Assembly: GCF_001194135.2 (NCBI RefSeq)
Contig: NC_068990.1
Coordinates: forward strand, 85,142,556-85,206,555
Source: Octopus bimaculoides
Lineage: Eukaryota
Length of the DNA: 64,000 nt
Direction of reading: 5' to 3'
Shown here piece by piece: positions 5,301 to 53,349 of the stretch; within the stretch, counting starts at the first letter, position 1; every line of letters begins with the position of its first letter. The notes beneath the pieces were generated by a model that saw only the letters and a list, made by a program, of their open reading frames with translations, searched no databases and was not told the DNA's origin. The translations under genes and the position numbers were made by a program.

Positions 5301-5559
5301 CTGTGGCATTCTAATCACGTATCTGTAGTAACAAAGATGCGATTCACAATGCAGTGAAGTAATGACTTAACCAGGAAAGACGTCTTGATCTCCAAACTAC
5401 ACATCCTCTGAAGTGAACCTCTTGAATACACGATGCCCTTATGACTTCAAACAACTTCTACCATGCACCTCCCCACCCATCCACGTAATTTGTTACCATG
5501 GTAACCACATATTCTACATTTTATTTAATTTAAGGCAGGAATTAATTGCAGAATAAAAA

Positions 5560-5790
5560 GAAATTCCAAATAAAAAATAACTTCTTTTATTTTGCCAAAT
5601 CATCTATATTCAATTCACGTTATTTATCAGATTTTGCTTTTCTGATGACTCGGTGACCTTATTGCAGCTGTTGGAGCTGCTGGTGTGGCCAATGTTATTT
5701 ATTCTTTCCTCTGGCTAGCAAATTCTGATGTGACATGACACACAATGCACACTTACATATATACACAGATATGTATACATACATACATAT

Positions 5791-5825
<35 letters not shown>

Positions 5826-5972
5826 CACATATGTACACACACATATATATGTATGCATATGCGTGTATGTATATATACATATGTACACACATATGTATGC
5901 TTGTATGTGCATGTATATATATATATACACATACACATCCATGCATACATATATATGTGTGTGTATATATAC

Positions 5973-6004
<32 letters not shown>

Positions 6005-6829
6005 TATATATATTTATAGCATACACACACACACATACACATATATATACATATATATATGTATATATATATATATATATACTACATACTACATAATGCA
6101 ATAGAAAAACTTAAAACAAAGTAATAATGAAAAAAACAAACAAACAAGCAAAACAGAAAAGAATTATAGATCAGAGAAAGAGAGAGAGAGAGAGAGAAAC
6201 CCAGCTTTGCTAGTTGGGTAATCGTTTAATTTCTTTCTTAATCAACTTGGTTCTTTACGATAGAAGAATTTTACAACTCAAAAAAAAAAAAGGAAAGAAA
6301 AATGTCTTATAGTTACAAAAAAAAATAATGATTTTATAATAATGATTTCATAATCTAATGGAAACATTTTCTTTTTCATTTGTGTTATTTTCTATAAAAT
6401 TGACGTCTTCATGGCTTAAGGAAACACTAAATCTAGCATCACGAGAATTGTTAGTCTTTGTTTCTTGATTATAAATTTTTTCTTTTCTTTTTCTTTTTCC
6501 ACCACAGAAGCATAATAGACAATGTGAGGCTTAACATACATACACACACATACAACAAAACAAAAAAAAAAACAACAACAAAGAAACACCAACATAGTGG
6601 GAACACAGCTAAATGTTTTCGATGTTAGACTGGTCATCCATTTTGTTCACGGAGAGTGCAACTGTCTTCATTGAAAAAACTGAAAGCCTTTTTTGGAGGC
6701 AGTTAACTGGTTTTTTTATTAACGCTCCTTGAATATAAATTCTCTGTACAAAAATTATTTATAAACAGTTGTGATACTCAGCCTGGTGATCGTTGTTAAC
6801 AGTGATTGTTTTCTTCTCTTTTTTTTTTT
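5560..6829 (-). other. probable collagen 3' UTR with candidate AATAAA signals (minus strand) at 6715-6720, 5698-5703, 5586-5591
   Basis: directly downstream of terminal exon; hexamers seen; actual cleavage site unknown. Confidence 0.45.
5750..6200. repeat. compound (TA)/(CA)/(GA) microsatellite
   Basis: direct reading; source of HTHT/IYIY pseudo-ORFs. Confidence 0.95.
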
Positions 6830-7092
6830 NNNNNNNNNNNNNNNNNNNNNNNNNNNNNNNNNNNNNNNNNNNNNNNNNNNNNNNNNNNNNNNNNNNNNNN
6901 NNNNNNNNNNNNNNNNNNNNNNNNNNNNNNNNNNNNNNNNNNNNNNNNNNNNNNNNNNNNNNNNNNNNNNNNNNNNNNNNNNNNNNNNNNNNNNNNNNNN
7001 NNNNNNNNNNNNNNNNNNNNNNNNNNNNNNNNNNNNNNNNNNNNNNNNNNNNNNNNNNNNNNNNNNNNNNNNNNNNNNNNNNNNNNNNNNNN

Positions 7093-7116: not shown

Positions 7117-7573
7117 CTGTAAAAGAGGGGAAAAAAGGTAAAAAAAAGAAAAAAAAAGGGAAGAAAGTGAATTAATTATTCTGTTCAATGGTTCTTTAAA
7201 AAAAGATAAAACAAACAAAAATACGAAAGTATGCAAAAAAAAAAAAAATCTCGCCCTCTCACAAAACAAAGACAGGCATAAACATAGAAAAGTTCCACCC
7301 AACCATACACAAACATTAATTATTCAACTTACCTTGCATCCATCAAAAGGCACTGCACTACCTACAAGATCTCTCGTCTCAAACTCATGCGCGCTGCTTC
7401 CTAGTAGAGTCAGCGCGTGTTCAAATCCTTGAGAATCCTGGTCGTACCAGGCCGCAGAATTCGAGCAGAAGTAAGTGAAGCGTTGTGTAACAAAGTTGCT
7501 GTTTAATCGCAAGAGACCTAATTGTACTCGGGAACTGTATTCAATCTGGTGGAAAGAAAAAGAATATATACAA

Positions 7574-7614
<41 letters not shown>

Positions 7615-7660
7615 AATATATAAATATATGTGTGTGTATTTATATATATGTACACAGATA

Positions 7661-7701
<41 letters not shown>

Positions 7702-9446
7702 CTCATAATGATGTGTATAGACATAATATAGTTTAATACTAATGTTTTCTAATGAAGACACAAGACCACAAATTTTATAGTATAAAGCAGTTAATTAAAT
7801 GAATTGTACTTATTGACTGGTAGTTATTATTTTTGGTTAGTTAATCGAAAGCAGAAGCAAAAATGAAAAAACCAACTTCAATAGGAATTGAACTCATATT
7901 ATATCTAATGAATGTTAACATTTAGTTCCATCATAGATGTATCATCGTTGTATCTGTTGCATCTAATACAATTTAGTCCTATCATAGATATGCCTGAAGC
8001 ATCTTCTGTGTGTAATCAGGGTAATATTTACCTTAAATCCATTTTCAATTTCGCTGAACCATTTCAGTTCCTTTTTATCTCTGTCCCATTTTCTTGGTAT
8101 AACCTTTGAAAGGAAACATAAAAATAAAGCATAAAATAAAAGGCAAATATATATAGATAAAAAGAAATACATATTAGTTTTCTGTGACTGTAAATCAAGG
8201 CCACAAATTTGTAAGATTCAACTGATTTGAACTCAGTATATAGTCAACTTTATATGGAATCTGTATATATATATGTATGCATACATACACACATACATAC
8301 ATACAGACATACATACAGACAGACAGACATACAGACATACATACATTCATACATACATACATACATATAAGCAAAAATAGCCTGTTGATGTTGTTGATAT
8401 TCCAATGAAGGAGCCTTGGATCTAGGTTAGAAATCAGCTCTTTCCTTTCTCTATTGGCAAGAATTCTTGAAATAAACCGAATAATGACATACACACACAC
8501 ACATATCTCACTATCTTGTCTCCAGCTCAGGGACAATGCCACTTTTTTCTTTCTTACATACATACATGTTGGCACTCCGTCGCTTACGACGTCGAGGGTT
8601 CCACTTGATCCGATCAACGGAACAGCCTGCTCGTGAAATTAACGTGCAAGTGGCTGAGCACTCCACAGACACGTGTACCCTTAACGTAGTTCTCGGGGAT
8701 ATTCAGCGTAAAACAGCATGACAAGGCTGACCCTTTGAATTACAGGCACAACAGAAACAGAAAGTAAGAGTGAGAGAAAGCTGTGGTGGAAGAGTACAGC
8801 AGGGTTCGCCACCATCCCCTGCCGGAGCCTTGTGGAGCTTTAGATGTTTTCGCTCAATAAACACTCACAACGCCCAGCCTGGGAATCGAAACCGCGATCC
8901 TATGACCGCAAGTCCGCTGCCCTAACCACTGGGCCATTGCGCCTCCACTACATACATACATGCATGCATGCATCAGAATTTTAACTTACAAATGGGGAAA
9001 AACACTCAGTACTTATAGTAGAGGTAATTCATTTACTGAAAGGTAAATAGATGTTGCTAGGCTGATTTTCTACTCTTATTATGTTTTTTTGTTTTGTTTT
9101 TTTTTATTAGATAGATTGGATAACATCTTACCATTCTTCTTTTTCGCAGAGGATAGACACAGGTCTCTCCATGGGCCGTCAGGTTACACCATACATGGAT
9201 TGAATCATTTAGAGCACCCATGTTAGGATCAATCCAATACCATCCTAAATTAAAACAAAATGTAATTCATTCTAAAATAAACAAACACCCATTGCAATCA
9301 TAATGTATTTTTTATGAATGTTAGAAATCAATATCATTCCTGTATTATGTCAACAGAATAACACCATCATTGTCAGCAGCAGTAGCATTGCTTTAACATC
9401 TATTTGTCCTCATCTTGTTTGTAATAATAGTAATAATAATAATAAC

Positions 9447-9501
<55 letters not shown>

Positions 9502-10285
9502 GAAATGGGAAAACTTTCAAAATACAAAGACCTGGAAATAGAGGTAACTCAAATGTGGAATCTAAAAGCAGAAACAATTCTTATCCTAGTAGGTGCCTTA
9601 GGTATAATAAAAAATTATTCAGACAAATACATAACAAAAAGACCAGGACTTACAAATATATATAACATACAGAAAATTGCACTACTGGGCACTGCACACA
9701 TCCTATGCAAAACACTTTCAATACAGTAACCATAAGAGCATCACAGCAAACCATAGCACATACCCAAGGCACACAGAGCTGCGCTCGGTAGTGCAGTGAA
9801 AGCATGTTATAATNNNNNNNNNNNNNNNNNNNNNNNNNNNNNNNNNNNNNNNNNNNNNNNNNNNNNNNNNNNNNNNNNNNNNNNNNNNNNNNNNNNNNNN
9901 NNNNNNNNNNNNNNNNNNNNNNNNNNNNNNNNNNNNNNNNNNNNNNNNNNNNNNNNNNNNNNNNNNNNNNNNNNNNNNNNNNNNNNNNNNNNNNNNNNNN
10001 NNNNNNNNNNNNNNNNNNNNNNNNNNNNNNNNNNNNNNNNNNNNNNNCTAGTAGGTGCCTTAGGTATAATAAAAAATTATTCAGACAAATACATAACAAA
10101 AAGACCAGGACTTACAAATATATATAACATACAGAAAATTGCACTACTGGGCACTGCACACATCCTATGGAAAACACTTTCAATACAGTAACCATAAGAG
10201 CACCACAGCAAACCACAGCACATACCCAAGGCACACAGAGCTGCGCTCGGTAGTGAAGTGAAAGCACGTTATAAATATAAAACTA

Positions 10286-10319
<34 letters not shown>

Positions 10320-13300
10320 GACCAGGACTTACAAATATATATAATATACAGAAAATTGCACTACTGGGCACTGCACACATCCTATGCAAAACACTTTCAA
10401 TACAGTAACCATAAGAGCATCACAGCAAACCATAGCACATACCCAAGGCACACAGAGCTGCGCTCGGTAGTGCAGTGAAAGCATGTTATAATAAACATTG
10501 AAAAATACCTTAAGAATGAGAACCCAGGTTTGAAATTTCCCCAAGACACCTGATGAAGGCTGGAGGGTATATCAGCCGAAACGTTGTGTTAACAACAAAC
10601 AAGATGACAAATGTAAATAATGTAAATAATGATCTGATAAAGTGTTAAAAGAAATTGAAAATAGTCAGAGTGACCTCATTTCTGACCCTTACTTCACCAT
10701 TCTATTCAGGGATGAGTATCAAAAATGTTATATTGCTTTTTGCATTCCTGATCACTACCAAACTTACTGATGCCACATAATCACACATAAGGTGTCAAAG
10801 GAATTGTCTGTATTTAGTTTGCATTTATAGTGTACCTATAAATTCATTTTTGAAATATAAACATGAATCCTGCCTACAAAGTGTACAAAAAGGAATTCAG
10901 TCCATCATAAAATATTTTCAGAATGTTTTCAGTTTAAAGCAGGATAATTTTAGCAAAGAAAGTGTTTTCTATAAGGGAAAAATTCCATGAAATATTTAAA
11001 GGATTTTAGATAGAATTAAATTTCAAATATGGTGTAGTAGTTAAAAGCGCAAGCTATTAACCCCAAGATTCTGAGTTCAATTCCAGGCAGTGAACTGAAT
11101 AATAATTATAATAACAGTAATAATAATATCGAAAAATACCTTAGGAATGAGAACCCAGGTTTGAAATTTCCCCAAGATACCTGATAAAGGCTGGAGGGTA
11201 TATCAGCCAAAACATTGTGTTAACAACAAACAAGATGAGAACAAATATCTGTCAAATGTAAATAATGTAAATAATGTACATAATTCCTCATCTCTTAAAT
11301 ATAAAACTGTACTTTAATGAAATTAAACTTTCTTACCATCTTGGAAGGTAGGATGTCCTAGATAAATATCTCTACATGAAACTGCTGGATTTTCTTTTGT
11401 TCCTTTCGGATACTTGAAATTTTTGATTTCTTCTGCAAGCTCATCAATTTCTTCAAACATTTTATTAACCACATCCTCAAGACCTTCCTTGATGGTTATC
11501 TTCTGGTTGGCCATTTCCTTAATTATTCCTTCTACTTGTTTCAATCCATCAATGGTTTCATTGTCATCATCCTCATCAACTTCTTTACTATCAAGTGATC
11601 GCTTCTTCCTCTTCTTCTTCTTCTTTCTCTTCTGGTGTCTTGGTCTGCCACCCAAGTAGTCAAGAGGAATGGCCTGAGCTTCTCCAGGAGCTCCTGCTGG
11701 TCCTGCTGGTCCCTAGGCAAATCAAGAGTCACCAGTTTTAAAGTACATGATACAAATATAAATAGCCTCCACCTGTGGTCATTAGTAGACTTATTATAGA
11801 AAACCTTTCACACAGTACCTTTAACCCTTCTGATACCAACTTTCCTGAGACTACCCTGTATTAAAGTGTTCTAAATTTAAGCCTTCCATGAAAATTTCAT
11901 GTTAATCTCTGTTCTGAACACTTGCTTAATAATAAACAAATTTAGCTTACATGATTCTTCATTGTTCTTAAAAATAATAAAAACAATTGAAATATAGTAA
12001 CAAAAAAGTTAACAAGATGATATCATGGTAAATTCTCCTCCTCTTGTATTCTTGGGACTCTTATAGAAGAAAAGATCTCACATAGTAACTCCAAGTAAAT
12101 GACATTACTATAAAGCGATAACCTACAGGTGGGTTTCTAGTGGACCCTATTAAGGTAAAATTCTTATACAGAAACTTTAAAAGATGATAACTTAATTGAA
12201 TTTTATGCCACTTAAACAATGAAAACATCAGCTTCCAGAGTTGTTACTAGAAAATATCAATTTTGAGATTCACATCTAAAACTGTAGCCTTGTTATCATT
12301 ATTCAAAACTATTTATTCCATTAATATGCATAATTTCACTGCATTTCTATCAAAAACCAATAAGCAGAGGAAGGAGATTGATTAACCAATAAAGAAGGTT
12401 TGCATTACAGTCATCACTGACTGAAATTGTGGCAGCTAAGTATTATTTTGTGTTTATAAGCCATTTAAAATAACACATAAAAACCATTAGATTTACTTCA
12501 ACATTTAAATTTAATTTGTCAAAATATTTTCGTCGCTTTGAATGTTGAAGTGAATCTAACGGGTTTTTGTGTGTTATTTTAAATGGCTTATAGACACCTT
12601 CCACACTGCAATTGTTTTCGTTCCAGCACACAATCTCAGATTAGGTCGCTTGCTATGCAAGTACATCTTCGTAATATTTTGTTTGTTGATCTGAAAATTA
12701 GCCTATTTTCTATGTACAGTAATGGTTATTAGATTTCCTTTGGTCACCAGCAATGTGAACCAGATCAAATAAAGGAGCCTCTAGTAGTCATTTGATCTGT
12801 TAGAAATAACAGTCAAATCTTTCTCAAATCACCCACAACATAGTTAAGAATAAAAAAAACTGCATATAGTCTTACTCGTAGACACCCTTAAAAAGTGGGC
12901 TGATTATAGCTGAAATGCATTTCATCATAGGTCCTTTCAGCCATAACTGATCTGGGATTAAATCAAGAACCCTAATACCAACAAATACCTAAACACTAAA
13001 ACCCCATTTTTTATTCCCTTAATCTGTTAGATATTTGCTTGTCCAGGAAATGAATAAATAATGGCTTCAATCCAGCGTTCTTTATGGAGGTTATTTCTTG
13101 TTCATTTTAACAGTTAATATTATACTTACAGTATGTCCTTGTTCTCCTTTGGGTCCAGTCATTCCCTATAAAATAAGGCAAAAAAGAAATATTGAATTGT
13201 ATTGTATTCTTAATAATTGTTTAAAAAGTAAACATGAAGGAAAATAATGAACATTTTATTCATGAAAACCCCCCAAGAATTTTAAGGTTTGCTAAAGAAG

Positions 13301-15705
13301 TGTTAGAATTTATTTCATTAATTAAAGAATCTAGAACATTTCTGACAATTTCTATATTTTCAGATTGTAGGTGACTTACATATTAGATACTCTGCAGCAA
13401 TTTAGCTATTTTCTAGTGAAAACTGTTATTCTACCATTTTACAGAAGTGTTCCAATTCTGAATTCCTTTGTAACTGCTATAAAGGCTACAATATTGAAAA
13501 ATAAACCCACAAAAGAGTCCCTATATAGATGCTCAATCTGCTAGAAAAGCAGTTAAATCTTTTTTATATCCTACCCAATAGTCTTCAATAAGGAAGGTCA
13601 TATTTAAAGATATAATCCTAGATAATTCTAGAACAACAAGATAGTCAAGGCGAAAATGTCTTTGATCCCAGATCTACTCAATCTGGCTTGGCATGGAGTT
13701 ACACAATAACTACAGTATTATTGTAGAAAAAGAGGGAACCTCTATGTGTTTGTTAAACCTGCAAGGAATAGCAAACAAATATCTCTCATATCATGTCCTT
13801 CTACCTCAATCCCGTCATGCCATATTCCCACTATTGTGGGAAGAGATTGAATATCATCTTTGCTAGATTCCTGGTAAAACAGTAATGAATGGCACATATA
13901 GAAAAAGAAGATGCAGCCAATTTTGTCCATTAGTTTGCTTGCAACCGTTACTTTTGAGCTGTATATGCAACTATTTATTTAATTTTTGGTCAGGAGGTCC
14001 AAATGGAGGGTACATTAAGACACAACAGCCCAGGTCTGAGTGAGTGAAAAAGGGAATGAAATAATGACTAATGTTATACTAGATTTATAAATACGACAGA
14101 ATAGCTGTGTGGCCATTGTTGAAATGCCTTTGATTACAGGTCTACTTCAATAAAACTGACCTGGAGCTAAACGACACGATGACGTTCTCCACCAGATTTC
14201 AGAATATGGGAAACTACATTAACATGATGACCTTTTTCTAGATCTTTCTACTCACCAACAAACAGTTTTACAAATTTTACCTTATTACTTTTTATGTCTT
14301 GGCCTTTCTTTGTTGTGGTTGCATTTAACTGTTCACCTTGATCTTGGGACATCATTAACAGCATTGATCTCAACACCTATTTTTACCTCTATTCATTAGC
14401 CCAGAGGAACTGAAACAGCTACAGGCATTACTTCCAGTGACTAATGGATGGAAAACAAATCCTCCAACAAAAACAAAGAATATCAAATAAATCTGTCTCA
14501 ACATTCACAGCAAATGTTCTGGCAGAAACATTTGATTCTCTGAGATAATTATTAGCAAAATCATACTTACACTTTCTCCTTTAGGTCCTGGTGGTCCTTC
14601 CAATCCCTGAGAGGCAAAAAAATGATATATTTAAACATTTTAGTATAGAATTTATACATATCCAAGTGCCTGAAACCAAAAACTGATATTGTAAAACAGA
14701 ACATTTAATATACACTTTAGATAATCTTTTTTTTTGTTCTTTTTAACAACAAAGGTTTATTACAATAGGCACCAAATCAGCTCGTTAAAGCAACAAACTG
14801 GGTCTACAAACTTGATTTTGATATGTTACTATGGTACAAACATGTAGGAATTATTTGAAAGTTCCCCTCCGAGGCACAAGTCTGGGCAAGGTTGTTTATG
14901 GAAGACCAGCAGTTGTCCATGCATACCAGCCTCCCCTCTCCACGCCACTGATGTTATCCAAGGGAAAGGCAAAGGCCGATACAGTTTGGCACCAGTGACG
15001 TCGCAACTCATTTCTACAGCTGAGTTAACTGGAGCAACGTGAAATAAAGTGTCTTGCTCAAGAACACAACACGCAGCCCAGCCCAGGATTCAAACTCACA
15101 ACCTCACAGTCGTAAGTTCGACGTTCTAACCACTGAGCCATGCATCTTCACAACGTATATATATATATATATATATATATGTACATATTTACATAGGTAC
15201 ACAAACACACATATGCAACCATATGGTATAGTATTTGTGTGTCATACAAATCCCTTGCCTATTTTCCTAGTAATTATTCTTATGTGTGCATTTATGTATG
15301 TGTCTGTGTGCAGGTTTCTGTGTATGTATGTGTGCAACTTTGCATGTATACTGGTGCATACTATCACTTATGTACTAGTTCTAGTGACTATGTTCTATTA
15401 TCTCATAAGAGGTACCAAGATAGAAAAATGTGTTTTATCAGTACAGTAAAATTAATGTAATGCTTACCTGTGGTCCAGGTGGTCCATCTGCTCCTGGTGG
15501 TCCTTCAGGTCCAGGTGGTCCCTATAATTGTAAAAAGGTAAAAAAAAAAATGATAATGAATTGATTATAGAGTATGAGAGAGTGGAGTAAAAAAAAATCT
15601 TAAATAAACTGAAGCCCTTCTGAAGTTGAAAGACAGATAAATCTAGTTTCTAATAATATTCAGTAAATGTATCTCTCTATTAATACTGTACTGCAGCAAG
15701 CTTTT

Positions 15706-15749
<44 letters not shown>

Positions 15750-18376
15750 GAAATTGAAGTCGCATAGCAAGTCAATGAAACTCTCCTTGATTCCATCATG
15801 TTTCTGCTGCTTATTATGCTAAGTCATGTCATTCAGCACATGCTGATCCTACATTATGTAAAGAAAGTTGTTATAAATGACAAATAAACTACTAATTATT
15901 TTCTTAAGCTCCAAAGTGCTTGAGCTATTAATACACATATACATATTAGAATTAAGAACAAGTGAGATAAATCTCTCTTTGTATAGGATCTACTTCAGAG
16001 ATTTTCCCTGTCAATGAAATGAAACTCAACACTACAAGCCAATAAAATAGTTGATAATTCCATAGCGATGCCACTGCTTCTCAATTTCGATTGGTGGATT
16101 TGACTGTTGCATTGGCTCTAAGCACATTATACTTTCTACGATAGTTTATTATTTATTAACCTCTTACTCTGTATTATAAATTGGAATATAATATTTAAAC
16201 GCTTACCATTGGTCCTTTGCTTCCTCTCTTTCCAGCTCTGCCTCTCTTTCCTGGTTCTCCTTTGGGTCCGATAGGTCCTGGTGATCCTAAATCTCCAATT
16301 TGTCCTTGATGACCCTAAATTAGAACACTTAATTAGATTATCATTAGAACTGGCACATGTCTTTTATGTCAAACATAATCTGCAGCATTTGAAAAGGGAG
16401 AATAGATGTGAGTCACTTCAGCAACGGTTAGTTGTAGATGTAGAACAGAAATATGGACTAAGACATAAGGGAGTTTTATTAATGATGTTAGAGAGACGAG
16501 AAATAATTCTTATTCAGTTTAAGTCACCATTCTATCAGAGATAACATTCCCAAATGATTTGGATCCTATTTACACTGGAGTGGCTGTGTGGTAAGTGCCT
16601 TGCTTACCAACCACATGGTTCCGGGTTCCATCCCACTGCGTGGCACCTTGGGCAAGTGTCTTCTGCTATAGCCTCGGGCTGACTAAAGCCTTGTGAGTGG
16701 ATTTGGTAGACAGAAACTGAAAGAAGCCCGTCGTATATATATATATATATATATATATATATNNNNNNNNNNNNNNNNNNNNNNNNNNNNNNNNNNNNNN
16801 NNNNNNNNNNNNNNNNNNNNNNNTATGTGTGTGTTTGTGTGTCTGTGCTTGTCCCCCACTCCCCAACATCGCATGACAACCAATGCTGGTGTGCTTACAT
16901 CCCCGTAACTTAGCGGTTCGGCAAAAGAGACCGATAGAATAAGTACTAGGCTTACAAAGAATAAGTCCTAGGGTCGATTTGCTCAACTAAAGGTGATGCT
17001 CCAGCATGGCCGCAGTCAAATGACTGAAACAAGTAAAAGAGTAAAAGAGTATTGTCTGAATGAAATGAGTTAAAAGGAAATAGACAGTTCTGATTAGAAG
17101 CTGTATAATATCTGCAGCAGTTCTGAATTTGAGATCCAGGAACATGCACACTAATATCACATCTATAGTTCGATATCTTGCCTCTACTATAGATTCAATT
17201 CATAAAAGGTTAAACTTTGGAATGTGGCATGAACAGGTTCATGCTATTTTATTAGCATTATCCTGTGTTTGAGAATAAAATTATTTCCTTATCTGTATCT
17301 TTCAATACATCCCAACGCTTCTAAAGCAAACTTTGTTTGTTGACTTTCAATCTAAGTTGAATTTAACATTGGAATATGCAATGTATATGAAAAAGGAAAC
17401 ACATGCACATTTATGGCTTTCATTGCTGTCTTTCTTTACTTGACATATAACTGTTTTTTTTGTCTTCTGTTTTACTATTTTCCCAACAAGATGTAATGCA
17501 CTTAAGCACTGTATGCAATAAACTCCTTATTATTTAACATCTAGGCTTGCATGTCCACTAAAACCTAGCTAATGTCTAGTTACTATACCACATCATGGAG
17601 AATAAAACATAAATTATTGACCCTGTTGTTAGTAATTTGATATCCAATCAATTGCACCAACTTCAAATTTCTTTTCATTGTGTTAATATAAAGTTTCTTT
17701 TCTTACCCAATACCAAATTACTTGTTTTTAAAAACTAGAATCATAAGCATATAACTGAATTATTTAAACATATTAGGGTTTCTTTTTAAATTAACACAAT
17801 ATATGTGATAGAAGGGAAGAAGAGATTGGGCCTTATACAGAGGAGAACTGGGAATTTCTGTGAGTAGGCCTATAACCAGCAGCAGATGAGATTTATGGCT
17901 GGTGAAAGGTTCTAGCTAAATGGAAGGTGACATGGTGGTTGAATAGCATGTGAGATAGAGATAATAAAAGATAAAAGAGAAGAGTGTAAACATTAGAAGA
18001 AAACTAGAGAAGTTAGGTGTTAGGCATTCTTAGCAAAGGTGAGAAGCTAAAAGTAATTCTTTGATGAGAGAAGAATTAGAAATATGAGATGTTTTAAATC
18101 GCAAAACAATGTACAAAGAGGATTTGAACGTCATTGGAGAGAAATGCATACAACATGACAGTAGCACTTATGATCTCACTGACGCTGAGAAGAGAAAGAG
18201 ATGTGGAAATACTTCTATGAGACGTTGTTGGATTAAAAGAATGCATAGCAAGAGGGAGGGAGGGAGAGAGAGAGAGAGAAAGATAGAGAGAGAGAAAGAA
18301 AGAGAAAGAAAGAGAGAGAGAGAGAGAGAGAGAGNNNNNNNNNNNNNNNNNNNNNNNNNNNNNNNNNNNNNNNNNN

Positions 18377-18418
<42 letters not shown>

Positions 18419-19989
18419 ATGCTCCAAATAGACCCAATAATGGGACCAGCCAGTGAAGTTGACAGCAGTATGGTCAAAAGCACGAATATGGATATGAAGG
18501 CAGAAAAGGCAGCTGGAACATCAGGGACAGTCGTTGAGATGCTGAAAATATATGGTGAGGTAGGTCACATATTAAACATTTGCATATTCAGTCATATAGT
18601 ACAGGGAGGTGTTGTACACAATGATTGATGTAAGAGTGTCATCTCCAATTGTTGCAAGGGTCAAAGAGATGTTCTGGTGTAGTGGTTCCCCACATTTTTT
18701 CTTTTAATGTTCTGCACCTCTCAGAAATGTTTGATTCATTTGTGCACCTTCTAACAAAAGTATTATCATAGGGAAATGAAAATTACCTAATTTATTTCTT
18801 TTTAAATCGAACCGCACACTGTACTGTGGGTTAAATTGAACTAAAAGAAAATGTGAACTGAGAAATTAGGAAAAGCTTCACACAATGAAATCAATCATAA
18901 TTTTTAACAGAAAATGCAATGACTTGTTTGTTCCTGTTTCTTGTTCATGCTTTTATTAAAACATGGAATTGTTTTGTTGATCGTGATCTTCAGCTCTGCT
19001 TTGTGGATTCAGGTGATTCCTAGCTTTTGTCTTCATTAGAACTGAATCCAGATTCACAACAATATGACATTGTGAATAGAATAGAACAAAGTTCTTTATC
19101 ATAATCACTTAAGGATTAACTCTACATCTATAGAATAACAACATTTTTGGTGTTTTTAATAAGATAATGTTATTTTATCAAGAGATAATTAATTTTATTC
19201 TGAAAAGCAATTTTAATGATGTATATACTTTCTCTCTTGAAGCAAACCCTGAAATATCTCATGCCCCCAGTAGGTGCATGATGGCATTTCAAGGAATACA
19301 ACCAAAAGAAAATGTATATTTTATACCTAAATGGCTTTGATATGGCCAGTAAGACTCTAGGCTTCCTCCAGGCCATAACAGAGCTGCTTATGTCAATGAT
19401 CTAAGTTCTTATGATTTGGAATACCTGCACTGGAAAGTGGCAAGTACAGAAGTATTAAACTGATGGACCAGATCATGAAAGAGTGCAACTGGTTAGAAAG
19501 AAAAATGAGATGCAGTTCAGGTTTGTGTTGGGACAAGATACCATCAATAGCCTTTTCCCAGTGAGACAACTGCAAGCACTTTGCTAGAAGTAAGCCGCTA
19601 TGTTTGAACATTCATTGACTCAGAGAGGGACTATGACAGAATGTCACGTTCTGTAATCTGGCGATTGCAAAGAAACTTAAAGGTAGATGAATGGTTTTTA
19701 TGCTAAAGACCTCATGGTTGGCTCTCTGTCAATAGTTTATAAATGAATTTTTAAATTTAGAAACAAAGCTTAGAATGATGAGGTCTATGTATAAAGTTGA
19801 TATAAATTTTCATAATATAATTTTTAACAAAGGAATATTAGTCATATATTTATATAATCTCTATACTGGATAAACAAGTTTCTTTATACTAACATTTTCA
19901 ATATATTAAGCAATTATTTCACACACTTATATTTATCTCACTCTAGCTGGTGATAATATGAGTAATTTACTTGTCTTTCACCTAACACG

Positions 19990-20050
<61 letters not shown>

Positions 20051-21786
20051 TATATTTATCAATTACACATTAGCCCAATTTGCTTTAGAAAAGTGATACT
20101 ATCTTTCTTTTTATGCTATATTTGAGTTAAGATTTGAATCCCACATATCAGGACAACGAACACTTGGCCTCTAATATATGTGAGGCACAGAGCTGTGCCT
20201 CCACACTGTAACCTATATACGGTTGTATATTAGAAATGAATGCATCTTGCTATAAATACAGTGAAACACTAGTGACATGATTTCAATTCCTCCAAGAGTT
20301 TGGGAAGATAGGAAAATACTCCACCAGGCGGCTACTTGTGATTCTTTAAAAGAACTAAAACTCCATATGTACCTTGGCACCTTTCACTCCGGAGTCTCCT
20401 TTAAGTCCTGCTGGGCCTCTGGGTCCCTGAAAAGTAAAGAATGAACAGGTTAGTAGAATATAAGGATATAAATATGACATAGAAACCAAAACAAAATATG
20501 TGTGTGTGTATGTATGTTGATATATATATATATATAGGTAATATCCAGGGATCCATGTTTGTNNNNNNNNNNACGATGATGATGATGATGATGATATATA
20601 TATATATATAAGTGGTAACCTTATGAAGCATGTTCAGTTTCCCACCTGCGTAGGATCGATGCAGGATGGATTGAAACAATCATTGTGAGTAATAAAGTTT
20701 GTCATATATTCCATTTTCCATGTCTATCGTTTGTTTTATATATATATACTTCCCCACACAACACACATAAACATATACATATAACATATGTTGTACACCT
20801 GACAAGATATATCTGCAGTGCCGGATGTTCCTGAACCAGTTGTTGAGTGTTCCACCCATGAAAGATTAATGCTTGATGGGTCAAAACAATTGTTGCGATT
20901 AATAATAATAAATTCTCCTATATTCCATCTTCCACCTTTTATTTGCCACACACACACACACACACACACATATTAGTATTTAGCAGAAGTAGTAGAGTGG
21001 CTCAAGGTCTGAGAGTTTTGGGCATTGCCACCCCACCTAACAAACTATAAATATATCTACACACACATATATACATATATGTATAATATATGTGATGGTT
21101 GTACACTCATGACCGAGGAAGACGATCACTGACCATTAAGAACATTGTGCACACAGACAACTTTATACTTTACATTTATGGTTTCAATGGTGACTAATGA
21201 GCCCAGTTTTTAATGAACAAATACATCCACAGATATTGTCAAGCAAGCTCCCCACTACACACACACATTATTTGTTTCTATTTTCTAATCAGTAGAAAGT
21301 TACAAAAATCAAGAATTTCACACACACCACTTTGATCATTAGAGTATTTAATAGGCAAACAAATAGACATACTATTATGTCCTTCAATTTAAAAGTCAGT
21401 GACCAAAGCTGGCCCCTTGAATTACTAGCACAGGCCATGAAAAGGGCTTCTATAGAGCTTCTGTGTATCCAATTTTAGTTGCAGTCCTGAATGAAGAAAT
21501 CCACATGTAATGTCATTGAATCCAGGACCATGTAATTATAAAGTAAACTTCTTATTGTTTGCCCTATTAATAAAATGTATATTTATATATTTTTATGCAC
21601 ATGATCTCCCATACTTACTGGCAATCCTTTCATTCCAGGTTCACCTGCTGGTCCAATAGGTCCACTCTCACCCTAGAAAAATACAAAATAAAAAATACAT
21701 ATTTATTGTGGTAAAACAGTATTATTATGATAACATACAAATTACAAGGGAAGTATATTTACATTTATATACGTATATCATTTCCG

Positions 21787-21865
<79 letters not shown>

Positions 21866-24800
21866 GTTCCATTTACATTTAGTGATCAGTACTTCATTAT
21901 GCAGCTGTCTTCTCTCTTGCATACAACATCTGATTCCTCTTATGTCCAATTACTAATTTTTTTTCTGATTATATTTGCACTTTGTTGAATGTGTACCCTG
22001 GCATCGTATATCCAGCAGATCATTTTAGCTTCATTTCTTTCTAGTCTTCATTTGTCCTTTGTATTTACATGCTGTTCATACAGAAGCATCATACAATCTG
22101 CTTTTCACTACAAGAACAAGGTCATCTCATTAGTACAGAGAAGTTCCCATGGGCCACTGGTCTTTAATTCCTCTGTTATGACCAGGATAAATTGGAGGGA
22201 AATGAGAGTTGAGCCCTGGTGAACTCCTACCTGCACACTAAATTTACTGCTGTACTCATTGCTAACTCTCATCTTACTGACAACATCCATGTACATGGCT
22301 TGAATAACACCAGATTTCTCCACACACTTTGATTATTTTCATTCCTGCATTTGAAAAAAGGTAATTTTTTTCTGAAATATTGGATCATTAGGCAATCTAG
22401 GTGAGGTAATACAATATCTTTTCTTTTTTTTTTTCATTCATTGACATCATTTCACATATTTTGTTTAGCTCTTTGCCTGCATCGATTGCTCAAAAGGTTT
22501 TGCAAACATTTATCGTTTCCACACATGGCAGTGCTGCAAACAAATTACAATACTCACATATTCAATATAATTTTCCTCACTTATAATTTTTTGTGCATTT
22601 TCAATTGTGTATTCACAATTGTCAGCGCTCATATTATTATAATTTTCAGTATATTTTACTATGTTTTAATTTTAATATAATTTTTAGTAATCTTATAGCT
22701 TTTCATCTGATTAAACTAAGACAAATAACAATGATATAACTATTGTTAAGGAACACCAAATAGAAACAGTTATTGATAAGACAAACACATCTGTAGATAC
22801 TGATGATCAGTTCACTTACCACTGGTCCTGGTTGTCCACGAAGTCCCTTGTTTCCTACTGGTCCAAGTGGTCCCTATTTTTCAAGGAAGATTAAAGAATA
22901 GAAAATAAAAATGCATGTAAATTATTGAGTACTACTAGCGTAGTTAATAATTACAACTCACAGCTAAATTTTTTTGTTAATTTAGTGTTTAAACTAAAAG
23001 ACTCAGTAAAAGTATGTGAATGGTTTATCAAGAGAATAATATGATAGTCTGAGCATCGGATAAAATGCTTTGCAGTATTTGTTCTAAGTATTTATGCCCT
23101 AAGTTCAAATTCCACATAGGTCAACATTTCCTTTCATCCTTCTGGGTCGATAAGAAAAAGTACTGTAATTGACCAATCACCTCCTCTCGATATTTCTCAC
23201 TCCGTGCTTAAATAAGAAACCATTATCTGAAAGCAACTGACCAACTCAATGTTTACTGTTAATATGGAAGTCACGTAGGATGTTTTTAGAGAAAAACTTA
23301 GGTGCTCAAATGAAGTTTTGCTATTTCCCAAGCAATCTCAAAAGAATCATCTTTGAAAAGATGCATTTACATTTACTTAAATGGCTTCCTATGATTTTCA
23401 AAAGTAGTCTAAGATGGAGGGTCCTGGAGCTATGCAAAGTGTATAATTCAGAGCAGGGTCAATGTCTGTCAAGTGACTATTATATGGTCCTTGTATCACT
23501 ATACAGCAGCAGAAGATATCTATATAATCTGGAAATCAGTATACAGCAGCAAGTGGATGATACATAATCCATGTTTGTTATATAGTTTCCATATCATAAT
23601 ACATTATGCACCAGGTGAATGTCATATAATTTCTGCATCTTTATACAACACTAAGCGAATGTTATATACCTTTTGTGCTATAAAGCATCAAGTGAAAGTT
23701 ATATAGTTACTCTGTCATTAAACAGCATTGGAATAATGTTAAACATTCTTTGTGTCATCAAATGGTACCAGGTGATATTTATATAATCTAGGTGTTAGTG
23801 AAGAGCACAAGATGATCGTTATATAATCCTGCCCTTATGTGGTCTGTTATGCACCATGATTCCTGGAGATCATGACATTAAGGTATAAGACTATAACATG
23901 ACGAGTTCAAAGTTATACTAGAATTATTGCAAATAAGAAGAGAGGATAATAATACATACACTAGGTCCTGGTGGACCTTGCTGTCCCATAGGTCCAGGAA
24001 AACCACGGTCACCTTTCTTGCCAATTTCTCCAGCGACTCCTTGAAGTCCAGGGCTACCAGCTGGTCCCTATGAACAAAACAAACAATTATAAAGACTAAG
24101 GGTAGATGATTTTTCAGAGACAACATAAACTTTTATTTGACAATTATTTAACAGAAATATTAAAAAAAGAGCCTTCCTACATGTTTGCATATTTGCCCTA
24201 GTGGGGGAATGTACAGAACAAAAAAAAAACCCTTTGAAGTCATGAATCTTCATTCAAGAATTCATAAATAAATGTGGGTTCATTTTCTACATCGTCTTCC
24301 ACATCACAATGTGATTTAACATTTATTATCTGGAATTTGTTAAAATAGAAATGGTTTTTATATATGGTATTTGAAGGCATATAAGATGCACTTCTTTCCT
24401 CCAAAAATGTCTCGAAAGGCATCCTGAATTCTATATATGAAGTTGGGCCAATATTATAAGCCTAAATATGCTTTAAAATTTTTTTCCTAAATATGCACTG
24501 CATCTGATATGCCAGTGCGTCTTTTATGCCATCAAATATGGTAAATTGCATATATTATTTTGATAATCTCCAAAGCCTTTCATTTAAAATTTTAAAAACA
24601 GATGGAAGAAAATAAGTTTACCTGTTTTCCTGTTAAACCTGGTAATCCAGTTTCACCTTGGGCACCGAGTGGTCCCTATAATATAAAAAGTAAAGAATAC
24701 ATAAAGGGAAAAATAAAGTAATTGAAGAAGGTGCTGTAGATCAGGGGTTTTCAAACTGTGGTCTGCAAACCACAGGGGGTCCGCAAGGACAAGACAGGGG

Positions 24801-27800
24801 GTCCATGGACAGCAAATACTTTTTATGGGCAATTTGATTTTATATATGTTTTTTAATCGAAATCTTTTAATTGACAATAAACCTATTTGTTAAATACTGT
24901 TAAATAAATAAATGTAAAAATATATGTTATTTTAAGCAAATATTTATGTATAAATTTCATAAGCATTTATAAGGGGGTCCCTAAGGTAAAGCCTAAAATA
25001 TAAAGGGGTCTGCAAGTCAAAAAGTTTGAAAACCCCTGCTGTAGATCAAGTCAATTTAATAAAGGATATACATGTGCTTGAGCACTGCTGGTATTTAGCA
25101 TGGGTAATCATCAGTGATGGTCTTCCTTGGTCACAAGTGGACACCCATTATCATCCATCATCATACATATATATACGAGTTGCCATGATTAATCAATAAA
25201 TCCACAACTTTTTTTTTATTCTCTTTCTGTTTATTTCTTCTGTTAAAGAGCGTAGGCTCGAAATGTAAAAGACTTTCTCAGTTTCCTGATCATCAAAGTA
25301 ATACACCTGCTTGTTGTTTATACAACTGTCTTCGCCTTTTGTTTTTCTGTAAATTTCAACTATATATATATATATATATATATNNNNNNNNNNNNNNNNN
25401 NNNNNNNNNNNNNNNNNNNNNNNNNNNNNNNNNNNNNNNNNNNNNNNNNNNNNNNNNNNNNNNNNNNNNNNNNNNTATATATATAGTTGAAATTTATATA
25501 TGTATATGTGTATATGTATGTATGTATGTATGTATGTGTATGTATGTATGTATAACATGGTATACTATTCTGTGAAGATAAGATTAAAAAAAAAAAAAAG
25601 TACTCCATCCGGCAAGAGATAAATATTGTTTAATGCACATATTTTTATGAACTACTTCAGAGCCTGAAGATTGCATGAAATCTCTTGTCGTGAACAACAA
25701 ATGAAGATTTAGTAAAATAAAATATTGATCATGTTCTATGGACATGAATGTCTCTTGAGGCCTGCTGGCGCCTTGCAAGCCTTTTGGCAAATGGAACAAG
25801 TTGAGGACTCAGTTTGCTTGTGTGCTTGTGGGTCATTTACTATATATGTTTATGTATATATATATAAATCTCCTCATCATTACTTTTGTAACATCCACTT
25901 CTCCATGGTTTGCATAATGGTGTCACTTATTTACAGCCACCTCATCATGTTAAGAGAAGGAGTAAACACATGCAGACACACATACACAGATAGACACACA
26001 CATAAAAATATATAAATGATGCTTCTGTCAATCAAAATCACTCACAAAGCTCTGATTGAACTGGGGCTATAGCAGAAAACACCTGTCCATGATATTCATT
26101 TTTGGATTGGTATTTTAGAGAAATTTTAAGAGTAAAAACAAAACATTTACTAGTAAAATAAACTGTGGCAAAACTGATTTTATTTTATTTATAAAACCTT
26201 TATTAAGTACATTTAGTGTGTTTTACTTACAATAGTTCCTTGTAGTCCATCTTTTCCATCAGTACCAGGTCGACCTGCTTCACCCTAAACAGGAGAAAAA
26301 GGACAAATGATTAATTGTGGCATCTGATATATATATACATATATGCTTAGATCATCATCATCATCATCATCATCGTTTAACGTCCGCTTTCCATGCTAGC
26401 ATGGGTTGGACGATTTGACTGAGGACTGGTGAAACCGGATGGCAACACCAGTCCTCAGTCCAGAATTTTTTAACGGTTTGTTCTGGAGAAAGGGGCAGTG
26501 CTCATGTCCCTTGCAGACCATCTGAGATTTGAGAAAGATGTGGATATGAATCTTATACACAAAGAAAAAAAGCAGAGCTGAGAAAATATTACAGACCTGT
26601 TTGTTAGTTATAACATCTATAATTTTGTCATTGATTTGAGTATAATTTACTGAATTAATCACAAAATTGTAATGAGTCTTTCTTCTTAGCCACTCTAGAT
26701 TAATAAAATACGGAGATGATTTTTAAAATGAGAATATCTGAAATAAACCTGACTGCTCTCACAAACGAGAATACTAAAAATGAACCTGACCACTCTCAAA
26801 AAAATTAAGTAAAAAAAAAACAGGAAAAATAATCCAGAATTCTCGTTCGGTACTGGATTGATCTCATAATCAGTTCATGCCAGTCATGACTTCAAACATC
26901 CCTGGAAGTTTCATACGAATTCATCCAGCAGTTCTTGAGAGATCTTGTCCATGGAGAAACAAACAAATATGACTGAAAACAATATCTCTGCCTTTGCTAA
27001 GGGGGAGGTAACAACGCAAGAAATGCCAAAAAGGAGGTATTGTGTACTTTAAGCTTAGGAAGACAAAGCGACAAAGGTCTCAGGGGTGTTGAGCACCACC
27101 ACTCTCACTGATTGCTTGATGTTATCATAATAAGAAGAAAACCACCCTTAAATCACACCTACCCTCATGCAGGTGGAAAGATATGCTGGACAGTGTCGAG
27201 GAAAAATTATTTTAAAAAATAAAAGAAAAAATTATCTTACCTTTGCACCAGCATTACCGAGGGGTCCAGGTGGTCCAGGATAGCCAACAACACCCTAAAA
27301 TTAAATGACAGGAAGAAATATATAAATCAATATTAAAATAATATATAGGTGATGTAGTTATAGATAATGGGGATTATTATTGTTGAAATATAAATAAACA
27401 GGAAGAGAGACAAGCTAAGCATGGAATGCCTACATGATTGCATAATCAGTTAGAACATAAGGCAATGTAGCATATTCAATAAAGTTATATAAAAAATATC
27501 TAAAAAATGAAAGAAAATTTCCTAATGACTATGAGGTTGAACAGGGAAACAACGGCAAAATCTTAAACTTACAGGTTCTCCTTTCGGTCCATCAGGGCCT
27601 CGTGGTCCTCTGGTACCAACTTTTCCTTGCAGACCTGTCTTACCCATGTCTCCTTTTTGTCCAATATTACCCGGAAGACCCTGAAATATAAGTGTAAATA
27701 ATAATAGAAAAAAAAAAGATGAGAGGCTGAGAAAGAATGGAAAATAGTTGAGAAGAACTTTGGGTAAAATATTTTGCACTGAGGACATTTGTTATTTCCA

Positions 27801-30228
27801 ATTTGATATATAATTTGAGAATTATGCAAGGCCCCTTCCTTCAGTTCTTCAAAGAAGTGAAAGTGTCTTCTTCAAAACATTTTTTCCCCTGTAAAATGAA
27901 TTTAAACTTATGAGATATGTTAACTCTTTCCTGAATGACCAGAATCTATTGTGTTGCTGCTTAAATATGGCTTTTGTACAAATAAATTAATGTAATATAA
28001 GTTGCTGTCCTTTCTGGAATAGGAAGCTAATCCACTACAAATAACTTCACCCAGCAGCTAAAAGACCTTGCACTTTCCATAAGTAATAATTAAATTAACA
28101 ATAAATATCTTCCTTTCTCTGGAATACAATGCTAACTTCATTGCAAGTAAATTATTTTCATACAGTTAAGTGCTAAACTTTGGTTCCTGTAGAATGAAGC
28201 AGATAAGTGACAATTTACTCTTCCACTACTAGGATACATATATATGGGTTAGAGGAGAAGGTTAATGGCACAGTGGTTAGAATATCAGGCGCAAAACTAT
28301 GAGGTGGTGTGTTGATTCCTGGATTGGCCAATGTATCGTGTTCTTGAGCAAAACACTTTATTTCACATTGCTCCAGTTCACTCAGCTGTAGAAGTGAGTT
28401 GCGACATCACTGGTGCCAAGCTGTATCGGCCTTTGCTTTATCCCTTAGATAACATCATTGGTGTGGAGAGGGGAGGCTGATATGCATGGGCAGCTGCTGG
28501 TCTTCCATAAACGACCATGCCCGGACAGGACTTGTGCTTTGGAGGGGTACTTTTTAGGTGCAATCCCATGGTCATTCAGGACCGAGGAGATGGGCATACA
28601 TTAGTATGCAACCACTAACAATATAGATATATTAATAAGTGACCTCTAGCAAATGGATTATATTTACAAGTAGGCCTTTGAAAGAATATGTTAATAGTTC
28701 ATGTCAGGCATGATGTTACCATGTGACACTTGCCAGAATATATTAACACATGAAATATGTCTGACTTTTGACATTTAAAATATATTTACAGATAATCTTT
28801 GGCATAATATTAACAAATGACCTCTAAGAAGATACCAACATGCAACTATTGACAGAATATGTCAACGTATGAGCTAGAATGTTAATATGTGACTGATGCC
28901 AGAATCTGTTGACATTTAACCTTTGACACATTATGTTAACACTTCACTTTTGATGGAATATATCAACATTTGACCTGACATGTGTTAATATATAATTTAT
29001 GACTTTAAGAATATTATCATCTTCAATGCTCTTCCTCAACAACCAAATACTTACAACTTCTCCTTCTTTTCCGGGTATACCAGGAGGTCCTGATGAACCA
29101 GGGGCTCCTTTCTCTCCCAATGGTCCTTGAGGGCCAGTATTTCCAGGTACACCAGGTGGTCCCTGAAATGAATAAAATTAGAATATATTGTAAGTTATTA
29201 CAAAAAATTTATATAGAAGATGCCTGCATGAACACACACACTTTCCTACCATTTGAACTCTTAAACATGGCGACTAATGAATGTACAACAACAGCAAAAG
29301 TTTTTGACTCCTCATCTACGATCCACATATAAAAAAAAAGAGAAGAAAAAGAACACTGTCTTGAAAGATAACATAAAATGCAGGCTCACAAATTCCCTTT
29401 CTGCCACCAAGTATATGTGTACAAGAATGACACTTCCAGAACTTGCAATTTCTCAAATGGAGTACCCTAAGGAATTTTCCCTTCATCTACTCTTTTCATC
29501 TTATACTTACATGATTTTCCAATTCCTCCACAGACAGACAGTCTTGCATGCAGAAAACATCATACACACAGTCTTCTTGTATTCTTCAGACACTGCTGCA
29601 TAACTGCTAATTAACATGGCATCAAAATACATGGCTTGCATATCTCTAATTTAAGGCTTCCAGACAATACTGCTCTACTTGGCAAGACTGAAGCTGGACT
29701 ACAAGAAATGACAATCGAAACACTATCAAACACACATGGTCTTTATCTCAACCACAAGAAAACAAAAGCCATAGTAGTAAGGAAAGAGAAGGTAAATGCT
29801 AGCATTAAACTGGTAGGGACCATGGTGGTAGTGTTATCAGGTATCTCCTCCTTTGGATCATATCAGAGACTCTGGATATTATTCAACTGAGACTGGATAT
29901 TATTCAACCGTTTCATTCTTGGTCTACCTTTAAGTCTCCTGCTGGTTGTCTTGACATGAAGATTTCATCTTGCAATGATTCTTTCCTGTAACATTCTTAT
30001 CATGTACCTGTAGTGCTGGAGCTGTGACCTCTCAATGCAAAGATGTAGTGGATCAACCTGGAGAGACTCTTTGATCTCCAAACTATGCACCAAAATACCC
30101 TTTGAAGGAACCCCATCTCAGCCACTTGCATTTATGATTGCACTCTTTCAGCCTTTATCCAACATTCATGACAATAGGTGAGTTGCATCTGGCTAAACAT
30201 ACATTTACACACACACACACACACACAT

Positions 30229-30312
<84 letters not shown>

Positions 30313-31596
30313 CCATACATAAGCATACATATATGCACTCATAAAAAACTCAAATATGAGAAATAGAAATAAAAATAAAAATATGTCTTACCATGGGGCC
30401 ACTTGTTCCTGGTGGTCCAGTGGGTCCGGCAGGTCCAGGTGGGCCCTGTAAAGTAAAAGAAACATTATATTAAAGTTTGTGGTGTATCAGTGTGACCAAA
30501 ACCTATTTTTGCTTTGTTCAACTTTTCAACATCTTCTCTTTTCTAGTTACTACCTTCTCTTTCTCATCACCTTCTCCTTCCCCCCTTCTGTCTCAACTTG
30601 GACCCAAGCCTATCATAAAGACTGACTCACTAATTTTCTTTGGTAAGGAAGAGCAAATATTCTTTCTCTGTTTGGTAGGGGTATGATGAAGGAAATTTTG
30701 TGCTGGACACAGCTGAAAGAAGGTTGAAGACAGAAAAAACCCCCTTAAGGAGGACTTATGAGGGTGGAGATGTTTTATGAAAGGTGAGTGAGATTGGTGA
30801 AATTGGAGCCCATAAGAGCCCACATTGATTATATGGCAGCAGATTTTTGGAAAAGAACTAGATGAAGCCATTTGGTTTTGGTCTATCAGGGTAAGTTGTG
30901 TTTTATGTAGTTAACCTCTGATTTCAAATCTAACTGGAAATATCTTTTGACTTAATTTCATTAAAGTTTACAGAATAAAGTATTACTCATATACAGGGTA
31001 TTTTTTTAAAATGAATATGCCCCTTCTTCTTCTTCACAACATCTGTGGCTTCATTCTAATGTAAGAAATCCTTATTAGCCCTGTCAGGTTGATGAAGGTT
31101 AGTTTTTTAGATTCATTTGCACCAAATCACTGTAAATCTTCTGTGCTTAGTTTAACATTAAGGGCAAAAAAAACTAAAACTTATTTTTTCCATTTTTCAT
31201 AATATGGAAGTGAAAGGGAAAAGATTTCACCAACTAAAATATGTCACAAATGATGTCTTCATTGATCAATCAACCAACCAACCAGTCAGTCAGCCAAAAT
31301 GACCAACTGACTGACCGACCCACCAACCAACCAACCAACCAACCAGCCATTGCAGAAAAGGACTTTATATAAATATAAAAAATGTTTACCTTGGGTCCTT
31401 GATCTCCAGCTTCACCTTTTTCTCCTGGAAGTCCTGGATTACCCTGAAGTCCTGGAGTTCCAGTTTGACCTCTTAATCCACGTGGACCATCACTACCCTG
31501 AATAAGGGGGGAGGAAAAAAGAAAGATTACATTGAGTGAAGGGACAAACCCATAAGGGAAAATATTGACATTACAACACTTCCAAATGATGATGAC

Positions 31597-31629
<33 letters not shown>

Positions 31630-37600: not shown

Positions 37601-37780
37601 GTCAACCCATAATATGTTGTGATAATGAGATATTCATTGTTAAGCAAAATTTATCACTCACCTTGTCTCCTTCTTCTCCAGGGGATCCAACAGGTCCGGC
37701 TGGTCCAGGATAACCCTAGAAATAAGAAATGAACATTTTTAAGCTTGTTTTGTTGCAAACATTATTATTATTATCCTCAT

Positions 37781-37824
<44 letters not shown>

Positions 37825-43800: not shown

Positions 43801-43905
43801 ATGTATTTTCACTTGAGGAAAACGGTTTTTTTTACAAATGATGTAATTAATCAATTAAAAATTCCTTGGAAATAGCTGTAGTGGACTGAAACATTGTCTA
43901 TCTGT

Positions 43906-43953
<48 letters not shown>

Positions 43954-46783: not shown

Positions 46784-46818
<35 letters not shown>

Positions 46819-52445: not shown

Positions 52446-52498
<53 letters not shown>

Positions 52499-52568
52499 GA
52501 TTTCTCTACTGACCATAAAAGGTTTATGTTAAGGAAAACATTATAGACAGTACTAGACAAAATAAAGA

Positions 52569-52607
<39 letters not shown>

Positions 52608-53298: not shown

Positions 53299-53349
<51 letters not shown>

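Follow-up and report, generated by a model that had tools for sequence, protein, structure and literature searches.

The window analysed here, a stretch of 64,000 nucleotides (nt) from Octopus bimaculoides contig NC_068990.1, consists of AT-rich eukaryotic sequence interrupted by 11 assembly gaps. Its minus strand carries a fibrillar procollagen gene that continues past the high-numbered end of the window. The triple helix of this gene appears in a six-frame scan as a long series of Gly-X-Y runs (Table 1), which are mostly 18 residues or 54 bp in length, with some exons of 45, 90, 99, 108 and 153 bp. A 54-bp exon pattern is classic for fibrillar collagen genes. Several of the gaps (16763-16823, 18335-18376 and others) may conceal more helix exons. 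The long helix is followed directly by a COLFI domain, the C-propeptide, and the exon at the junction opens with Gly-X-Y triplets. The region of interest consists of the first two COLFI exons and the one intron between them. There, an initial annotation had noticed that the chain has neither Cys2 nor Cys3, the two cysteines of the canonical interchain disulfide, and carries Gly and Ala in their places. We find that the two replacements are real, and that such a double loss is an ordinary, inherited state that has already been described in reviews.

The product obtained by joining the four readable C-propeptide exons matches the Pfam COLFI family (PF01410) with E=1.6e-45 and a score of 155.7 bits (curated cut-off 26.2) over profile positions 5-185 of 233. 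Its phmmer alignment to the human alpha1(I) and alpha1(III) C-propeptides (CPI, 5k31, and CPIII, 4ae2) is gapless from Cys1 to Cys5, and pairs kmCh with ylGh at Cys2 and nqGCnld with nmGAlnd at Cys3. When placed on the disulfide map of CPI, which consists of Cys41-Cys73, the interchain Cys47-Cys64, Cys81-Cys244 and Cys152-Cys197 (Sharma 2017), Cys2 (Cys47) is Gly and Cys3 (Cys64) is Ala in the window chain. The ungapped alignment to 5k31 and 4ae2 thus confirms both residues as the initial annotation had read them. Exactly five cysteines occur in the 258 residues read, at the positions of Cys1, 4, 5, 6 and 7, the same five that had been listed as present, and the complete orthologue, P0001, has six, Cys8 included. 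It can therefore be deduced that no cysteine is shifted or unpaired, and the observation stands against the suspicion that Cys2 and Cys3 had merely been displaced in the alignment. The intrachain pairs are Cys1-Cys4, Cys5-Cys8 and Cys6-Cys7; all of their members are read in the window except Cys8, which is seen in the 82% identical orthologue.

From the end of the helix to Cys4 there is no other cysteine, with none in the C-telopeptide or the stalk, and none was found in any of the listed Gly-X-Y runs in the window. The chain can neither donate nor accept the canonical interchain bond, as the annotation had concluded, since both sites are occupied by Gly or Ala and neither the C-telopeptide nor the C-propeptide has a cysteine to spare. 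Because that disulfide is impossible, any trimer has to be non-covalent at the COLFI domain. The Ca2+-site residues D, N and D, which had appeared to be retained, are indeed found at the aligned positions in the phmmer alignment as Asp59, Asn61 and Asp67; the role of Asp67 is described by Sharma 2017 and that of Asp1277 (= Asp59) by DiChiara 2018 (PMC6181919). An AlphaFold2 model of the product, with a mean predicted local distance difference test (pLDDT) score of 86.9, shows two helices (residues 18-31 and 36-62) and, after them, a globular domain. The 17 best matches of this model among PDB structures in Foldseek are all CPI or CPIII chains, with template modelling (TM) scores of 0.52-0.63 and E-values of 4e-10 to 5e-8. 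As read from the sequence, the hydrophobic residues of the stalk, V-M-I-L-I-F, are spaced 3-4-3-4-3, a heptad pattern, inside the predicted helix 36-62.

Missing cysteines could also result from an artefact or a pseudogene, that is, from an error of sequencing or assembly, a mis-joined gap or a decaying copy, and among the 11 gaps of the window one lies between two of the exons and another apparently over the last coding exon. The first of these, 9814-10047, was the one flagged in the initial annotation. It is bordered by 98%-identical copies of a repeat, and for this reason we take it for a break caused by the repeat or for an overlap that was left unmerged. The gap is intronic; moreover, all four exons that could be read have AG/GT flanks and join into one open frame of 258 residues. 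The exon junction across this intron is also found in L001, a JGI sample contig of 1618 nt, which encodes the nearest homologue, P0001 (82% identical). The coding sequence of P0001 is intronless on this contig, which can therefore be taken as a spliced transcript. Bases 7-146 of L001 correspond to 11474-11335 of the window and bases 144-259 to 9245-9130, so that the junction is read straight across, and the joined window open reading frame (ORF) aligns with P0001 without gaps across 178 residues. Since L001 crosses the junction with no residues missing, no exon is hidden in the gap. The gap is harmless to the observation, and normal splicing gives an uninterrupted frame.

Gly and Ala are likewise present in this independent transcript, which comes from a related species; they are encoded by GGT at the Cys2 position and by GCT at the Cys3 position. 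In the window, the codons GGA and GCT are each two steps away from a Cys codon. Between window and orthologue, 68 identical residues are encoded by different codons; over 178 codons the proportion of nonsynonymous differences (pN) is 0.11 and that of synonymous differences (pS) is 0.77, which is saturated, giving a pN/pS of about 0.14. With pS saturated and pN low, it follows that the species split is ancient, that the COLFI domain is under purifying selection and that the Gly and Ala are older than the split. The idea that the missing cysteines are an artefact or mark a pseudogene is therefore one to which we attach almost no weight.

The initial annotation had placed Cys8 in the gap at 9814-10047, which proved incorrect. 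Searches of the window with tblastn and blastn gave no match for the last coding exon, which encodes Cys8, and only blocks of the 3' untranslated region (3'UTR) were matched. The corresponding exon of the orthologue, ~143 nt long, codes for ...FGFEAGPVCFS and supplies Cys8 together with the stop codon. The coding sequence of L001 ends at base 686, and base 789 in its 3'UTR corresponds to window position 6752, which projects the stop near 6855 and the exon into the gap at 6830-7092. With its last coding exon projected into that gap, any gene model derived from this assembly would be truncated at the 3' end. For annotation purposes, then, the exon model is fixed: the flagged gap does no damage to it, and the last coding exon is projected into another one.

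To judge how common the double loss is, we scored Cys2 and Cys3 in relatives of the chain. Both were absent in 35 of the 35 nearest homologues from a first search. An exhaustive HMMER scan of 1.84 billion representatives (50% identity) returned 319 proteins at E<=1e-10; the best 150 of these 319 representatives contained 117 scorable COLFI domains, among which 60 lacked both cysteines, 32 lacked only Cys2, 7 lacked only Cys3 and 18 had both. A profile search brought in 103 more proteins, with both cysteines absent in 45, only Cys2 absent in 27, only Cys3 absent in 4 and both present in 22, while 5 were unscorable. Proteins with several COLFI domains are counted more than once in these tallies. 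For one predicted protein (P0023), which reads through an intron, the regular-expression match was spurious and the state was taken from the alignment. Among the proteins returned by the scan, P0052 (4172 aa), P0055 (4522 aa) and P0066 (1564 aa) are giants in which COLFI-like stretches recur 6 to 13 times; they contain motifs such as SGRYWIDPNGGE and have no Cys3. These resemble non-collagen multi-COLFI proteins.

Both cysteines are absent in every named protostome recovered: Mytilus edulis COL5AS, Pinctada imbricata, Ridgeia piscesae, Medioppia subpectinata, Rhamnusium bicolor and Timema monikensis. The complete chains among these (Mytilus, Pinctada, Ridgeia and Medioppia) have six cysteines, and the nearest named relatives of the window chain are bivalves and an annelid. 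All of the named vertebrate sequences recovered (CO5A1, COBA1, CO2A1, an alpha1(I)-like chain and others) have at least one of Cys2 and Cys3. In a neighbour-joining tree of the COLFI domains, which was built from numpy distances, bootstrapped and midpoint-rooted, and in which the deep branching is unresolved, the window chain lies inside a protostome clade with 100% bootstrap (Mytilus, Pinctada, Ridgeia, Medioppia and arthropod-type sequences), all members of which show the double loss; this clade stands on its own and is not nested in the vertebrate V/XI group (99%). The label "clade B" is unconfirmed, as the N-propeptide, which in clade B contains a TSPN module, lies beyond the window and the tree does not place the chain inside V/XI. 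The database names of relatives, "COL5AS" and "collagen type V/XI/XXIV/XXVII alpha", are automatic labels. Elsewhere in the tree, an invertebrate-looking pair without either cysteine, P0027 and P0065, falls with vertebrate clade A at 96% bootstrap. Because P0027, P0028 and P0065 group with clade A and also lack both cysteines, the double loss extends beyond the V/XI-like protostome clade. These three are abundant COLFI sequences of marine metatranscriptomes, in clusters of up to 56 members. A literature search found no paper on cephalopod C-propeptides; the primary source on cysteine patterns in invertebrates is reportedly Exposito et al. 2008 (JBC). The absence of both Cys2 and Cys3 as a possible state of invertebrate chains is recorded by Exposito et al. 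2010.

An alternative view is that the double loss is an unusual, lineage-specific mark of a partner in an atypical heterotrimer. It draws on the human chains that miss one of Cys2 and Cys3, which are found in heterotrimers only, as obligate partners (DiChiara 2018, PMC6181919), and on the fact that no human chain lacks both. However, the state is shared by all 35 of the nearest homologues, by all named protostomes and by a uniform clade with 100% bootstrap, and it had already been recorded for invertebrate chains (Exposito 2010). In addition, a chain with neither cysteine cannot be captured covalently by any partner, and the vertebrate code therefore gives no ground to expect a heterotrimer. 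We regard this explanation as highly improbable. The premise from which the initial annotation had reasoned, that the Cys2-Cys3 bond is the only interchain disulfide, is sound for vertebrate chains, where C2 and C3 form the only interstrand bonds (DiChiara 2018, PMC6181919; Sharma 2017), but does not extend to protostomes. Its proposal of either a non-covalent trimer or an unusual heterotrimer survives in the first part, at the level of the COLFI domain, and fails in the second. With it goes the implied rarity: by the homologue survey, the tree and the literature, the double loss is the norm among the invertebrate relatives of the chain, an outcome that the initial annotation had itself named as refuting.

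Some elements of a likely assembly route can be recognized in the chain. In vertebrate chains, Ca2+ drives non-covalent trimerisation of the C-propeptide even without Cys2 (DiChiara 2018, PMC6181919). In the case of the window chain, three chains would most likely associate non-covalently in the Ca2+-rich endoplasmic reticulum via the base region and a coiled coil of the stalk. This association would set the register and nucleate the triple helix, and the helix would then hold the trimer. The propeptide would be removed by cleavage at a conserved polybasic furin-type site, before S. The candidate site is a 16-residue polybasic run just past the end of the triple helix, after which come S and an acidic stretch. 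The run is conserved in a related genomic contig, P0007 (RRRKKKKKRRRRS), and most relatives have R-x-K/R-R. In appearance it is closer to a furin-type cleavage site of the C-propeptide than to one of the BMP1 type.

Taken together, our preferred reading is that the chain belongs to a protostome six-cysteine type, and that its state was inherited from a deep protostome ancestor and kept under purifying selection, with no local peculiarity; we put the probability of this at roughly 0.85. Several points weigh on the other side. The survey samples consist mostly of unnamed sequences and were ordered by their similarity to the query, so that the fractions given above describe the relatives of this chain and not all animals. 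Cys8 and the last ~47 residues are unread in the assembly. Non-covalent assembly, for its part, is inferred from the missing cysteines together with vertebrate biochemistry, and under native expression the interstrand disulfides are argued to be essential for templating the helix of vertebrate chains (DiChiara 2018, PMC6181919). In CPI the central Cl- ion is coordinated by Arg39 and Gln62 (Sharma 2017), and these residues are Val and Met in the window (11380-11382 and 9219-9221, minus strand). Because the Cl- ligands are replaced, the base interface cannot be identical to the vertebrate one. Lastly, interchain cysteines could be present in the N-propeptide and in that part of the helix which the window does not cover.

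This last point is the basis for a further alternative, in which the covalent link lies elsewhere, in interchain disulfides of the N-propeptide or of helix parts outside the window. Fibrillar N-propeptides do commonly have cysteine-rich modules (Exposito 2010). Within the window, however, the listed Gly-X-Y runs, the C-telopeptide and the stalk are all free of cysteine. Furthermore, folding runs from the C- to the N-terminus, which puts N-terminal bonds after chain selection, and they would thus come too late to replace a C-propeptide lock. A covalent link elsewhere is, in our opinion, unlikely, though it deserves more consideration than the heterotrimer.

If the chain is of the inherited six-cysteine type, as we prefer, a broader proposal could be considered: that protostome fibrillar procollagens as a class assemble without a covalent C-propeptide lock, with the loss compensated in this lineage by a threefold axis re-engineered through hydrophobic Val and Met in place of the Cl- ligands, and by a lengthened helical stalk. 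When all retrieved domains are compared, Leu or Met occupies position 62 in 102 of the 154 with double loss and Gln in 75 of the 100 that keep Cys3; this apparent link between Leu/Met at position 62 and the loss of Cys3 is confounded by phylogeny and serves as a lead only. We advance the class-wide proposal tentatively and would sooner bet against it. Were it true, the vertebrate "cysteine code" would be a derived layer over an older, purely non-covalent mechanism. The discovery value of the double absence is small, since reviews already report it and it is the default throughout the protostome clade to which the chain belongs. It does serve as a reminder that the vertebrate rule, by which the helix needs interstrand disulfides as a template, does not hold for protostomes. 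The window chain, or better its complete orthologue, would make a usable test protein for the trimerisation of six-cysteine C-propeptides.

Table 1. Features of the procollagen gene and other elements of the window (positions in the window).
Feature	Position	Strand	Evidence or content
Triple-helix exons	15468..62824	-	Six-frame Gly-X-Y scan: 41 runs, all on the minus strand
Junction exon	11337..11712	-	AG/GT flanks, ends in phase 1; translation and ungapped alignment to 5k31/4ae2; holds the last Gly-X-Y triplets, C-telopeptide, polybasic run (11646-11599) and two predicted helices
Stalk	11481-11416	-	Within junction exon
Cys1	11376-11374	-	Junction exon
Gly at Cys2 position	11358-11356	-	Codon GGA; junction exon
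Intron between first two exons	9245..11336	-	Canonical GT...AG ends; (ATA)n microsatellite and interspersed repeat copies
Assembly gap, intronic	9814..10047	.	Flanked by repeat copies of 227 nt (9586-9812, 10048-10274), 98% identical
Third copy of 227-nt repeat	10265-10491		
Second C-propeptide exon	9132..9244	-	AG/GT flanks; upstream junction confirmed by spliced orthologue transcript L001
Ca2+-site Asp, Asn, Asp	9230-9228, 9224-9222, 9206-9204	-	Second C-propeptide exon
Ala at Cys3 position	9215-9213	-	Codon GCT; second C-propeptide exon
Cys4; Cys5	9188-9186; 9161-9159	-	Second C-propeptide exon
Third C-propeptide exon	8032..8103	-	tblastn and blastn to orthologue; splice flanks
Fourth C-propeptide exon	7333..7545	-	IEYSSRVQL...TYFC...DGCK; Cys6 7467-7465, Cys7 7338-7336
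Assembly gap, projected site of last coding exon	6830..7092	.	Orthologue 3'UTR colinearity; projection, not reading
3'UTR	5549..6752	-	Four colinear blastn blocks, L001 bases 789-839, 1157-1191, 1196-1229, 1445-1508
tRNA-Thr (CGT) gene or tRNA-derived element	42754-42827	+	ARAGORN and Rfam (38.5 bits)
Interspersed repeat, ~196 nt	2165-2360, 8753-8948		Inverted copies, 88% complementary
Intronic repeat, 117 nt	10494-10610, 11125-11241		Two copies, 93% identity
Degenerate (TATG/TACA)-type simple-sequence runs	5724-6082, 7553-7713, 8244-8388		Introns and 3'UTR

Besides the collagen gene, Rfam and ARAGORN searches over the window found nothing in the region of the first two COLFI exons, and elsewhere only the tRNA-Thr, which lies in a collagen intron on the opposite strand. 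The interspersed repeat of ~196 nt is probably a SINE-like element (SINE, short interspersed nuclear element), and one of its copies lies in the intron that immediately follows exon 9244-9132. The simple-sequence runs translate as YVCMYVC-like pseudo-ORFs.

Compared with the human alpha1(I) and alpha1(III) C-propeptides (5K31, 4AE2), the window chain has the same fold at about 32-36% identity, with a stalk helix in both, and it retains Arg42 and the Ca2+ ligands. It differs from them in having Gly and Ala instead of the interchain Cys47-Cys64 bond, in a polybasic rather than BMP1-type site between helix and propeptide, and in an extra helix predicted N-terminal to the stalk; its chain-recognition region is 8 residues shorter than that of COL1A1. 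With heterotrimer-only chains of the pro-alpha2(I) type (DiChiara 2018, PMC6181919) it shares the lack of an interchain cysteine, and those chains still trimerise transiently and non-covalently in Ca2+. However, they miss one cysteine and are captured by a partner with both, whereas the window chain misses both. The COLF1 domains of Monosiga brevicollis (Exposito 2010) also lack Cys2 and Cys3, but they are in addition without Cys5, Cys8 and a triple helix, while the window chain keeps Cys5 and its orthologue Cys8. Like the window chain, the protostome six-cysteine chains lack both cysteines, have a short chain-recognition region, carry Leu or Met at position 62 and show R-x-K/R-R behind the helix. 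Even so, the window chain is only 40-47% identical to the named members of this type, and together with its 82% orthologue it differs from them by a polybasic run of much greater length and by Val at position 39.

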